DNA of 64,000 nt, taken from IMG/VR virus record IMGVR_UViG_3300020473_000010, positions 124,001-188,000 of that record; one strand, 5' to 3'. A program made the translations under genes and the position numbers. The notes under the pieces were generated by a model. That model made no database searches and was not told the DNA's origin. It saw only the letters and a program-made list of their open reading frames with translations. Every line of letters starts with the position of its first letter. Within the stretch, counting starts at the first letter, position 1. Positions 34,226-49,898 of the stretch are shown piece after piece.

Positions 34226-34302
34226 TATTTCTCCATAACTTTTTTTTAACGAAATTAATTTTTTTAACTAAACTGAACTGATACTAATAAGTATGCATGA
34301 AT

Positions 34303-39565: not shown

Positions 39566-39596
39566 AATTTAAGCTCCTATATCTGTTTCATAAGTA

Positions 39597-46362: not shown

Positions 46363-46393
46363 AAAAAATGTCGCCAGAATAAACTGGCGACAT
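46363..46393 (-). terminator. intrinsic terminator after decoration genes
   Basis: ATGTCGCCAG-TTTATT-CTGGCGACAT-TTTTT. Confidence 0.9.
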
Positions 46394-46425
46394 ATTAATT
46401 AAAAATTAAGAGGCTGAAGGATTTT

Positions 46426-47304
46426 TTAAGTATTTACTGTAAATCCACCGGTGTGTGCAAACCACCATTTTCCTTCACCAACCCATATAAGGTGGGCAAG
46501 GTGAACTGCGGTATTATCTGAGGTGGTTGCGTTTGTTCCTGCTGAGGCGTCTGCTTTATAGAACGTACCGGTTAAGGTAAGAGGAACACTCGCACCTAGC
46601 GCTGCTGCTGTAATAAATTTTTCTTGACCAATAGCAGTACCATCAGGGATTGCAATTTGAGAATCTACTGTTGCAACCTTTAGACTCTGCACAATCGTTG
46701 TATGGGTTGATCCAGCATTTATTGTACCGCTACCAACACCATCACTGGTTAATACAAACGTACAGTCTGTAATACCACCAGCCGCGGCTTGAACATCTCC
46801 GCCTGTTGTATTATCGGTTGTATTGGTTTCAGGGTAATTTGCTAAATACCCAGTTGCAAGAACATAAATATCAACAACACCGGCTGTTGCAATTGCGAAG
46901 AATTTTTTCGCTGACTTTGTTCCACTATTGACTGCAAGGGCCAGTGCAGTTGCTATATCTGCTTCACCTTTATCCGCATTGTTGCCCAAAATGACGGGAG
47001 AAACTTCTTCTGCGCTCAGATCCGTCACTACAGTGGGAGTTGAATCAGATGTTGCTTTTCTAAACCAGAAAGCATAAACTTTTCCATCTCTATCTTCAAT
47101 TGTTAAATATTTATTATCGTAGGCTTCAGCTGGTGCGCCGGCGCCGCCGCCGTTATGATCGACGACGAAAGTTGCTTTATATACAGCACTGGCGTGAGTT
47201 GAATCTCCATCAGCCGAGGGAATAATGGGAGCATCATTAACCTGGAATGCTTGTCCAGAATCTTGAAACAGCCCTTTTGTTTCATTATAAGTTACTTTTG
47301 GCAT
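46426..47304 (-). CDS. head decoration/fibre-like protein B
   Basis: N-terminus paralogous to 47319-47726; Ala/Thr/Gly-rich beta protein; follows major capsid. Confidence 0.6.
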   Translation of the reverse strand: MPKVTYNETKGLFQDSGQAFQVNDAPIIPSADGDSTHASAVYKATFVVDHNGGGAGAPAEAYDNKYLTIEDRDGKVYAFWFRKATSDSTPTVVTDLSAEEVSPVILGNNADKGEADIATALALAVNSGTKSAKKFFAIATAGVVDIYVLATGYLANYPETNTTDNTTGGDVQAAAGGITDCTFVLTSDGVGSGTINAGSTHTTIVQSLKVATVDSQIAIPDGTAIGQEKFITAAALGASVPLTLTGTFYKADASAGTNATTSDNTAVHLAHLIWVGEGKWWFAHTGGFTVNT

Positions 47305-47318
47305 AATCTACCCTCCTA

Positions 47319-47726
47319 TTATCCTTCTGTCGATTCTAATTTAGCAACGTGACACCATTTGTCGCCATTTGAAATTAAGACAGAAGTTTCGCCAGCTGCA
47401 TCGAATGTCAAAGTGGCCAAACCAGTCCCATTTAACCTAATACCGCCGCCTGTTAAGGTAATTGCACAGGAGCCGCCACTTCGAGACGCACACGTAATTA
47501 CTTTTTTTGTTCCAGCAGGCTCTGAAGAAGTTGGTGCGGCAAGTGTCGCAGTGGGTGTTCCGGATGTAAGCGCAAGTGTTGTAACACCGTATGGATTGAG
47601 GGCTCCCAAGGCGCCAGTTCCTGAAAGTTCTTGGATTTCCTCTAAGATGGGGACATCATTAACTTGAAAACCCGATCCTGATTCTTGGTAAAGGCCCTTT
47701 GCGGCCGAATAGATTACTTTAGGCAT
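47319..47726 (-). CDS. head decoration/fibre-like protein A
   Basis: MPKVIYSAAKGLYQESGSGFQVND; C-terminal TLTFDAAGETSVLISNGDKW. Confidence 0.6.
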   Translation of the reverse strand: MPKVIYSAAKGLYQESGSGFQVNDVPILEEIQELSGTGALGALNPYGVTTLALTSGTPTATLAAPTSSEPAGTKKVITCASRSGGSCAITLTGGGIRLNGTGLATLTFDAAGETSVLISNGDKWCHVAKLESTEG

Positions 47727-47759
47727 AATTTTTCTCCTTAAAATTTATATGTTAGAGTT

Positions 47760-47822
47760 ACTTGTCCACATGATTCCGGTGCGGGCGTGTGGGGTCCGCT
47801 ATTATGCATGCACCGGGCTTGA
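47760..47822 (-). ncRNA. candidate structured cis-regulatory leader RNA
   Basis: ~60% GC island between late motif and SD; CCGGTGC/GCACCGG stem plus CCACA/TGTGG pseudoknot pairing. Confidence 0.5.
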
Positions 47823-47879
47823 CTATAAGTATGCAGTATTATATCCAATTTATAAAGATTGTAACGTTTTTTCCGGAAA

Positions 47880-47910
47880 TTAAAATGGGCGGCCACTTGG
47901 ACCGCCCATG
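47880..47910 (-). terminator. intrinsic terminator after major capsid gene
   Basis: ATGGGCGGTC-CAAGT-GGCCGCCCAT-TTT. Confidence 0.85.
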
Positions 47911-47933
47911 ACATCGTAAGGATGAAACCTTTA

Positions 47934-49898
47934 TTAGATGATGTTCAGATCGAGAACTGTAACAGTACCGTAGAAGTCAGAGCGAACCATCTTCTTACCA
48001 TATCGGGTCATGACACCCTTACGAGGAGTGAAGTCCTCAGGAGCAAAGATAGTAGGAGTAACAATCAGAGGCACATAAGGTGCATACACGTATCCTGTTT
48101 CAAGATAGCTTCCGCCCTTGTAACCGATAAGAATCTTGTTACGTGGGAAGTAAGGATCTTTGTAAACCGTGAAACGATTACTAAGAGAACCAACTTTTTC
48201 AGCACCGATTGTCATCGGGTTACCAACCTGTCCGTCACCGTCAAGGCTATAAACTGGCTTGTACATTACAGAAGATTCTAAGATCGTAGCAACATCAGGT
48301 CCGACAACGACGAAGTTGGCAGAACCACGAAGGGTTTTACGATGGATTGTATTAGCAGCATCGATGATGGTCTCTGCAAGAGTCTCATACCACTCGCGAA
48401 CTGTACCTGTGAAAGCAGGACCAGGGCGAAGGGAAGAACCACGTGCGATTGCAACACCGGTTTCCTTATTAACAAACTGACCTGGACTACGTGACCAATA
48501 AAGATTAGCACCGTTAGCTTGGGTCAAGAGATCATTCAAGATTTCACGATCAAGCTCTAGAGCGATTTGCTCAGAAAGGATTTGAGTAAGCTCAACTTCA
48601 GCATCTAAACTGTGATAAGCGTTCAAGTCCTGAGCAAGTTCTGGGGTCCAGCGAGCACGAAGCTTTCTGGTAGCCGCAGTAACACTGATTGACTCAATCT
48701 TAATATCAATCTCTGGAATAACAGGCTTGTTGCTAGCGCCAGCCAAAAGATTTGATTCAAACGAAGGAACTACAACAGAATCGCCGGAATCTCCTCCAAC
48801 ACGATCTGGACCAATTGCAAAACTAAGGTCAAGAATTGTGGCGCCAGTTGCGTCATTCATATTAGAAATATCAACGCTAGCGTTACCTCGGCAAACCGTA
48901 AGTACATAAGCATTTGTATCACCAATAGCAGCCAAAGGTGCTGCAGTCGGAAGACCAGAACCATCCCAAGTAACCAATTGGTTTAATCGACGAAGATTGA
49001 AAATGTTTAATCCACCTTGGAAATCTTCTCCCCAATCGACGAAATCATCATGCTCACCAGCGGCGCCGGTGGATGCATCAGGTGTAATAGCAATATCTTT
49101 AATCAGTGTTAAATCAGCGGCTCGAGACTGAGCATCGTTGAAATACGTAGTATTGGCTGGAATCATAGCAAAGAAAAGTTGCTTAAGAACAGCATCTTCA
49201 AGCCCTTTCTTAACTTGTGGATCAAATTGCATCCATTTTGCGTTAGAACCAGTAAACTGTGCTACAGCTGTGATGTGCGCATCGTCAGTAGCTTTCCAAG
49301 CGTTGGAATCATCCCAACATCCATATGCAATACCAGCTGTTTCGCCAGAAGTCAGTGCATTGAATGAGTGTCTTCTAGAAAATCCAGCACCAGCCAAGTC
49401 ATATTGACCACCAGTTGCTAAAGAACCAGATCGAACACCAGCACCACTTGGGTTATTATAAATAGATTGTCCACCATCATAAACTGCAGAAGCGGCGCCG
49501 GAACCAGCTTCTTGACCACCAACGTCATTGCCATATGTGTAATCAAGGTAGAAAAGCAATCCAGCAGGAAGGCTCATGGGTTGAATAGAAACAAGATCAT
49601 TTGCAACTAATCCACCGAATACACGACGAACGATTGGAAATGCAATGTTTTGGAAACCTCTGATATCACCGCTGGCTGATGGGCCAGTTCCGGTAGTACC
49701 TGAAGCACCTAAAGTATTTGCTTCGCGAAGAAGCTGAGCAGCCTGATTCTCTAAGAGAACAGACATATTTTCACGAGATTGACCTTCAAGACCACGAAGT
49801 AAACCAGTTCGGTTCCACTTCTCTGTAAGTCTTTGATGTTGAGCACCCATATTGCGTTGGCGAATGCCCTCGGTCAACTTATCTAAAGTAAATGACAT
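47934..49898 (-). CDS. major capsid protein (T4 gp23-like)
   Basis: LLENQ, FPIVRRVF, VSIQPM..PAGLLFYL, RKLRARWTPELAQDLNAYH, DAEVELT, EIDRE-like ELDREI, YAPYVPL, FTPRKGVMTRY. Confidence 0.95.
   Translation of the reverse strand: MSFTLDKLTEGIRQRNMGAQHQRLTEKWNRTGLLRGLEGQSRENMSVLLENQAAQLLREANTLGASGTTGTGPSASGDIRGFQNIAFPIVRRVFGGLVANDLVSIQPMSLPAGLLFYLDYTYGNDVGGQEAGSGAASAVYDGGQSIYNNPSGAGVRSGSLATGGQYDLAGAGFSRRHSFNALTSGETAGIAYGCWDDSNAWKATDDAHITAVAQFTGSNAKWMQFDPQVKKGLEDAVLKQLFFAMIPANTTYFNDAQSRAADLTLIKDIAITPDASTGAAGEHDDFVDWGEDFQGGLNIFNLRRLNQLVTWDGSGLPTAAPLAAIGDTNAYVLTVCRGNASVDISNMNDATGATILDLSFAIGPDRVGGDSGDSVVVPSFESNLLAGASNKPVIPEIDIKIESISVTAATRKLRARWTPELAQDLNAYHSLDAEVELTQILSEQIALELDREILNDLLTQANGANLYWSRSPGQFVNKETGVAIARGSSLRPGPAFTGTVREWYETLAETIIDAANTIHRKTLRGSANFVVVGPDVATILESSVMYKPVYSLDGDGQVGNPMTIGAEKVGSLSNRFTVYKDPYFPRNKILIGYKGGSYLETGYVYAPYVPLIVTPTIFAPEDFTPRKGVMTRYGKKMVRSDFYGTVTVLDLNII

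Follow-up and report, generated by a model that had tools for sequence, protein, structure and literature searches.

The region analysed here is a 64-kb stretch (the window) of a 288.7-kb IMG/VR virus record with a GC content of 36%; among public runs, the DNA sources that carry the sequence of this record are marine metagenomes. Around the leader described below the genes run on the minus strand, and the leader itself sits within a 207-nt gap between a capsid gene and a 135-residue open reading frame (ORF). The genes and transcription signals of the locus are:

47934-49898, minus strand: Gp23-type capsid gene, identified by a profile match
47885-47909, minus strand: intrinsic terminator of the capsid operon, a 10-bp stem followed by a T run (sequence and terminator search)
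47838-47865, minus strand: sigma-70-like promoter, GTTACA-16-TATAAT, with 10 of 12 matches (upstream alignment)
47826-47833, minus strand: T4-late-like promoter motif, CATACTTA (invariant columns and genome-wide positional peak)
47820, minus strand: predicted transcription start (T4 late spacing rule and a conserved A at this column)
47319-47726, minus strand: first gene, encoding a 135-residue all-beta protein with the conserved N-terminus MPKVxxTxxKGLxQExGxG (ORF, model and homologues)
46368-47304, minus strand: second gene (292 residues, 46426-47304) and the terminator of the operon (46393-46368) (ORF list and terminator search)

The closest capsid proteins from cultured phages, those of Flavobacterium phage immuto (43.5% identity), Microcystis phage Mel-JY01 and Rhodothermus phage RM378, are only 35-47% identical to that of the window, and the virus therefore belongs, as judged from sequence, with uncultured marine relatives of the distant-T4 group. 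The best Gp23 profile match covers only residues 389-644 of the 654-residue capsid protein, implying that its N-terminal half is extra or strongly diverged.

The 135-residue product of the first gene has no match in Pfam or PHROG. Its AlphaFold model (mean pLDDT 79) is all-beta, and the fold matches are to tailspike N-terminal domains, a phage capsid spike and the N-domain of T4 gp9/10, together with a cluster carrying Phage_cement_2. Across the family to which it belongs (the MPKV family), some 20 N-terminal residues are conserved and the remainder is highly variable, with lengths from 75 to about 320 residues; by sequence, its members resemble exchangeable surface proteins held by a constant anchor. 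The N-terminal module is joined to very different C-terminal parts, and tandem paralogues are frequent. With the capsid gene on one side and a gp13-like gene on the other, the gene fits a head or neck accessory protein. Its position beside Gp23-type capsid and gp13-like genes and the fold similarity of the modelled protein suggest a link to head assembly, and the name of decoration gene, given to it in a preliminary description of this DNA, is plausible as a candidate label. In two relatives a Lys/Pro/Glu-rich protein of about 145 residues is encoded between the leader and the MPKV gene (L171, 2038-2466, minus strand; L214, 1026-1475).

Both the capsid terminator (47909-47885, 10 bp) and the late promoter motif (47833-47826, CATACTTA) that the preliminary description had pointed out are present. 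The late-type motif lies upstream of the leader in every aligned homologue, with its TA..TA positions invariant throughout, and most of its positions agree with those of the T4 late promoter, TATAAATA. It is one form of a CATA[ACT]TTA family that, genome-wide and on the gene strand, is concentrated 18-36 nt ahead of start codons; that of the leader, 99 nt from the start codon, is a clear outlier, in agreement with the earlier remark that other late leaders are short. T4 late transcription starts at the sixth base past the motif, and by this spacing the transcript would begin at about A47820, 3-4 nt ahead of the first helix, with the 5' end AAGC leading directly into it. These 5' bases (AAGC or AGGC) might pair with a GCC after the AUG, both sides of this candidate pairing being invariant. 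The sigma-70-like promoter, which precedes the late-type motif by about 5 nt, has TGnTATAAT-like versions restricted to close relatives; it may be an optional second promoter of the leader. The metatranscriptome contigs found in public runs comprised conserved capsid pieces of relatives only, none of them reaching the leader.

On the mRNA (minus) strand, positions 47820-47723 form four helices, termed H1, H2, PK and H4. The first 59 nt (47820-47762) have a GC content of 59%, against 37% for the window, and correspond to the block described earlier as about 60% GC. The elements of this core, all identified by alignment, are:

47810-47816, minus strand: 5' strand of H1, CCGGUGC
47796-47799, minus strand: 5' strand of H2, GCGG
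47789-47795, minus strand: 7-nt loop, ACCCCAC, the last four bases of which (47792-47789) are the 5' strand of PK
47785-47788, minus strand: 3' strand of H2, ACGC
47776-47782, minus strand: 3' strand of H1, GCACCGG
47770-47775, minus strand: conserved linker AAUCAU (consensus AA-n-C-n-U)
47762-47769, minus strand: 3' strand of PK, GUGG (47769-47766), followed by conserved ACAA

Homologues of the leader were collected through the capsid gene, which retrieved 80 loci at 60-77% capsid identity; many of these contain the leader by blastn and nhmmer, at 71-90% nucleotide identity. A covariance model (R1) gave 41 matches in the first 85 sources, every one in the orientation of the gene, and other loci and independent ENA/JGI contigs supplied more. 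A loose DNA pattern scan yielded mostly chance matches, its only new loci being L166, L171, L181, L185, L187 and L201, since L100 repeated the L013 contig. In its final form the alignment (A5) comprises 43 distinct sequences from marine phage contigs.

Across these 43 homologues H1 is 99% paired with compensatory changes in four of its seven pairs, the short H2 hairpin is 93% paired with changes in all four, and PK is 100% paired, again with changes in all four. For the three helices together 97.7% of cells are paired, compared with 70.5% in shuffled and at most 42% in slid controls; 12 of the 15 pairs show compensatory changes, and the covariation score is 0.74 versus 0.18. The junction, loop and linker of the core contain invariant unpaired bases. 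The window itself carries a mismatch in H2 (G47796 against A47788), and folding of the single sequence is not significant on either strand (MFE z = -0.28 sense, -1.31 antisense).

The comparison bears out the CCGGUGC/GCACCGG stem proposed in the preliminary description (47816-47810 with 47782-47776, H1) and its loop pseudoknot, in which CCAC(A) (47792-47789) is complementary to (U)GUGG (47769-47766) ahead of ACAA. An alternative GCGG/CCGC helix proposed alongside them finds no support, the conserved inner hairpin being 47799-47796 with 47788-47785. Doubt had also been voiced over which strand folds, and this is settled in favour of the mRNA sense strand because the alignment contains about 30 G-U cells on that strand and because the promoter, Shine-Dalgarno (SD) sequence and AUG belong to the same unit; a fold of the opposite strand was rejected, as the G-U cells would there become A-C. 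A real, conserved RNA fold is well supported by these sequence comparisons.

The fourth helix, which goes beyond the features noted before, pairs the internal loop between H1 and H2 with the start-codon region of the first gene. It and the neighbouring elements of the initiation region are:

47801-47807, minus strand: 5' strand of H4, GCAUAAU, within the internal loop J1/2 (47809-47800) (complementarity and covariation)
47740-47761, minus strand: G-free spacer, present in "long" variants only, with CUCU at 47757-47754 (alignment)
47734-47739, minus strand: Shine-Dalgarno AAGGAG, in the loop between PK and H4 (sequence)
47723-47729, minus strand: 3' strand of H4, AUUAUGC, including the start codon (47726-47724) (complementarity and covariation)

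H4 spans -8 to +5 about the AUG, so that the structure encloses both initiation signals of the first cistron, with the SD between PK and H4 and the AUG within H4. The mean duplex energy of H4 is -6.45 kcal/mol; the 18 coding bases that follow give -1.83. Compared with shuffled loops its z-score is -3.15, with 39 of 43 sequences beating 95% of their own shuffles, and cognate pairs outdo permuted non-cognate pairs in 5000 of 5000 permutations, a figure inflated by the relatedness of the sequences. The two strands change together among the homologues: AUAAUC/GAUUAU, GUGAUC/GAUCAC, GUGAAC/GUUCAC, UUGAUC/GAUCAA and CAUAAC/GUUAUG, like GCAUAAU/AUUAUGC of the window, are among several independent compensatory switches, and AUAGUC/GAUUAU, UUGUGAUC/GAUCACAA and GGUAUAA/UUAUGCC also occur. 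In the two relatives in which the Lys-rich gene has been inserted first (L171 and L214), the H4 strand matches the start region of that gene, indicating that H4 is tied to whichever start codon comes first in the operon and not to a particular protein. Comparison of the homologues establishes the four helices, their conservation, and a fixed position relative to the promoter motif and to the first start codon.

The loop from PK to H4 is about 10-12 nt in short variants; long variants, including that of the window, add the G-free spacer, giving 20-35 nt between core and SD. This A/U/C spacer, with AAGGAG (47739-47734) and AUG (47726-47724) behind it, is the unstructured tract and start signal of the preliminary description, whose span (47727-47832) holds the features reported for it and ends too early, the element reaching 47723. 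The spacer bears a CUCU or UCUC tract complementary to the SD and may pair with it, the SD being invariant so that this pairing could not covary. No alternative, mutually exclusive structure was found for the leader.

The element is abundant in ocean viromes. It stands at the 5' end of one operon type, that of the small beta-sandwich proteins with the MPKV N-terminus, and it is this operon that accompanies it, the capsid gene not always being beside the leader in relatives. The covariance-model matches (E 1e-6 to 1e-16) lie in a single orientation before this operon type, with one copy per genome in the genome of the window and in five relatives of 132-273 kb. Everywhere except in L081 an MPKV-type gene in the capsid locus is preceded by the leader RNA; second tandem paralogues inside the operon have no such leader. 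The motif is absent from the records of five other relatives, three of which also lack the gene. In L210 (1331-1500) the gene has a diverged leader fold that keeps H1-like and H4-like pairings, and in L211 a gene of the same family (at 1905, minus strand) has a plain 5' hairpin upstream and an open start region. A blastn search of the leader region against cultured phages gave no match, and the element was not found within 5 kb in the phages with the closest capsids, immuto, Mel-JY01 and the uncultured LR756508.

The preservation of a start-codon helix by compensatory change, and its retargeting when the first gene is replaced, point to control of initiation. We therefore favour, tentatively and with somewhat less than even confidence, the view that the leader is a cis-acting translational gate for the first gene of a small head-accessory operon, with a protein effector on the model of the S4 operator of the alpha operon, T4 gene 32 and the P22 scaffold. 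In such a gate the late-type promoter would fire a few bases ahead of H1, and H1, H2 and the loop-to-tail pseudoknot would fold first into a three-way core. The internal loop of the core would then pair around the AUG to form H4, leaving the SD in the bridging loop or, in long variants such as that of the window, opposite the CUCU tract. This closed form would bar the 30S subunit from placing the start codon, and output would be set by whatever opens or locks H4. The putative effector is most likely a protein, either the operon's own product in its unassembled state or a different late factor, and synthesis would in that way be linked to assembly of the head. Probably this 5'-terminal fold has a second role in shielding the message from decay. 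Against the gate, H4 is short and AU-rich, and a constitutive weak helix might tune translation and not switch it; the plain hairpin and open start of L211 fit a stabilising role at least as well.

The E. coli alpha-operon (rpsM) leader, which controls initiation of the whole operon, is a nested pseudoknot operator bound by ribosomal protein S4. Both it and the phage leader form a multi-helix nested pseudoknot around the ribosome-binding region of the first cistron, a likeness in how they would work. There is no sequence or model similarity between them; the phage leader is phage-encoded and precedes a structural-type gene, and its repressor is a proposed one. The T4 gene 32 leader combines a 5' pseudoknot with an unstructured A/U tract and serves both autogenous repression and mRNA stabilisation. 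The likeness here lies in a T4-type phage message that begins with a pseudoknot, in the unstructured tract leading to a strong SD in the long variants, and in the idea that the pool of free protein sets translation. In contrast to gene 32, the gene downstream of our leader encodes no single-stranded DNA-binding protein but an all-beta sandwich like cement and spike N-domains, and the leader has four helices, one pairing the AUG directly, with short variants lacking the tract. For T4 soc and e (lysozyme), start regions are masked by RNA structure in some transcripts, and soc, like the first gene here, is a late capsid-accessory gene of a T4-type phage with an initiation region sequestered by mRNA structure. 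In soc and e the late promoter lies inside the hairpin, leaving late transcripts open, whereas the conserved promoter of the leader is upstream of the entire fold; a soc-type mechanism, with the promoter inside the hairpin, was rejected.

The leader might instead be mainly a 5'-terminal protective knot that guards an abundant late message against 5'-end-dependent RNase E or a 5'-to-3' exonuclease, with H4 merely keeping the AU-rich start region out of the way whenever translation of it is not under way. The predicted start 3-4 nt before H1, the location of the element at the 5' end of the operon and its absence before internal paralogues are all in keeping with protection, as are the simple 5' hairpin that substitutes for it in L211 and the T4 gene 32 leader, a known stabiliser. 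We consider it unlikely, though a serious contender, because a stabiliser has no need of the many invariant unpaired bases, the pseudoknot or a covarying start-codon helix, and the 5' end on which it depends is one predicted from the promoter motif.

A small-molecule riboswitch, in which the three-way core would bind a metabolite and thereby stabilise or prevent H4, is improbable, though it too is a serious contender. The compact pseudoknotted core is aptamer-like, with invariant unpaired bases in junction, loop and linker, and is coupled to an expression platform that overlaps the start codon and initiation region. The preQ1-II, SAM-II/V and guanidine-III riboswitches likewise have a small pseudoknotted domain that buries part of the initiation region; the leader matches none of these, pairs the start codon and not the SD, and has a structural and unique gene context. 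The lack of a match to any known family would suit a new riboswitch. However, recurrence before the synthesis or transport genes of one metabolite was not seen: the leader occurs with a single operon type, once per genome, beside structural and not metabolic or transport genes, in long variants it is separated from the SD by 20-35 nt, and there is no candidate ligand.

We scanned three variants (that of the window, L067 and L049) with the covariance models of Rfam 15 and obtained nothing relevant at E<=10, in line with the earlier failure to match the leader to known families by eye. The topology of the leader is one otherwise known from folds of the HDV and glmS ribozyme type. H1, H4, H2 and PK follow the strand order of the HDV nested double pseudoknot, H1a-H4a-H2a-loop-H2b-H1b-PKb-...-H4b corresponding to P1-P2-P3-L3-P3-P1-P1.1-...-P2. 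The resemblance to HDV-like ribozymes, minimal and theta forms included, extends to a 7-bp outer helix (H1) and an inner hairpin of 3-4 bp with a 7-nt loop (H2). An HDV-like self-cleaving ribozyme would cut read-through transcripts immediately ahead of H1, so that the message began with a 5'-OH, and minimal HDV-like ribozymes lacking P4 are known in phages (PMC10879173). The defining features of the class that could be checked by sequence are, however, absent. HDV-like ribozymes pair the start of L3 with the bases directly 3' of P1 to form P1.1; the leader has no such pairing, its AA after H1 being invariant, its loop positions 2-3 varying (CC, CA, AC, UC, AA) without compensation, and the 3' half of its loop pairing 6 nt further on. 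The cytosine essential to HDV-like ribozymes, which opens J4/2 immediately ahead of the 3' strand of P2 (PMC10879173), is also missing: the corresponding segment, AAGGAG(A)n, is a purine-rich SD without cytosine, and the C of ACAA, the one conserved cytosine in the vicinity, is replaced by U in L006 and L007. The counterpart of P2 is moreover the start-codon region of an mRNA, the conserved promoter lies only about 4 nt upstream of the supposed cleavage site, and no HDV model matched at E<=10. Membership of the HDV-like class was rejected on the absence of P1.1, the J4/2 cytosine and a model match, and self-cleavage of this kind is highly improbable. A broader proposal, that the leader founds a new RNA class with an HDV-like nested double pseudoknot, either a ligand-sensing riboswitch or a catalytic RNA, the first dedicated to a capsid-accessory operon and widespread among uncultured marine T4-related phages, strikes us as speculative but worth bearing in mind.

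We give hardly any credence to the absence of an RNA element, with a small ORF, a DNA-level packaging or protein-binding site or chance complementarity in its place: a 58-residue ORF (47738-47914) does overlap the region and single-sequence folding is no better than shuffles, but the ORF was rejected as coding since it crosses the terminator and promoter and its homologues differ by indels of 1-2 nt, while compensatory changes keep RNA pairs, sense-strand G-U included, and covariance-model matches fall in one orientation before one operon.

The earlier interpretation of the leader as an undescribed cis-regulatory RNA agrees with a fold that covaries, is tied to the downstream start region and has no Rfam match in three variants; of its other options, a ribozyme is improbable, a packaging or DNA-level element is not supported, given the sense-strand G-U pairs and the AUG within the pairing, and protein binding is a putative function. 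To our knowledge, few structured leaders control phage structural genes, T4 gene 32, T4 soc and e, and the P22 scaffold being the standard examples. The leader would fall within the known class of structured cis-regulatory mRNA leaders, with its function a predicted one. A literature search did not find it described, and it is apparently new, though it may be listed in a catalogue of >10,000 viral candidate RNAs (PMC10690425). At about 100 nt the RNA is compact, its four helices are backed by covariation, and it is joined directly to a start codon. Were it to respond to a protein or metabolite, it would reveal how capsid and capsid accessory proteins are kept in proportion in large marine phages, and a small new regulatory part would be on offer; if it stabilises mRNA alone, it would still be a clear case of a knot standing in for a 5' cap.

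Further CATA[ACT]TTA copies precede other genes, for example at window positions 39591, 42760, 45834, 46336, 51699, 57819 and 59844 (minus strand). Some copies have unusually long leaders of 62-122 nt, at window positions 34288 and 2308 (minus strand) and genome positions 21347, 58285, 114819 and 211880; that at genome position 21347 is C-rich. Such long leaders could conceal more leader structures.
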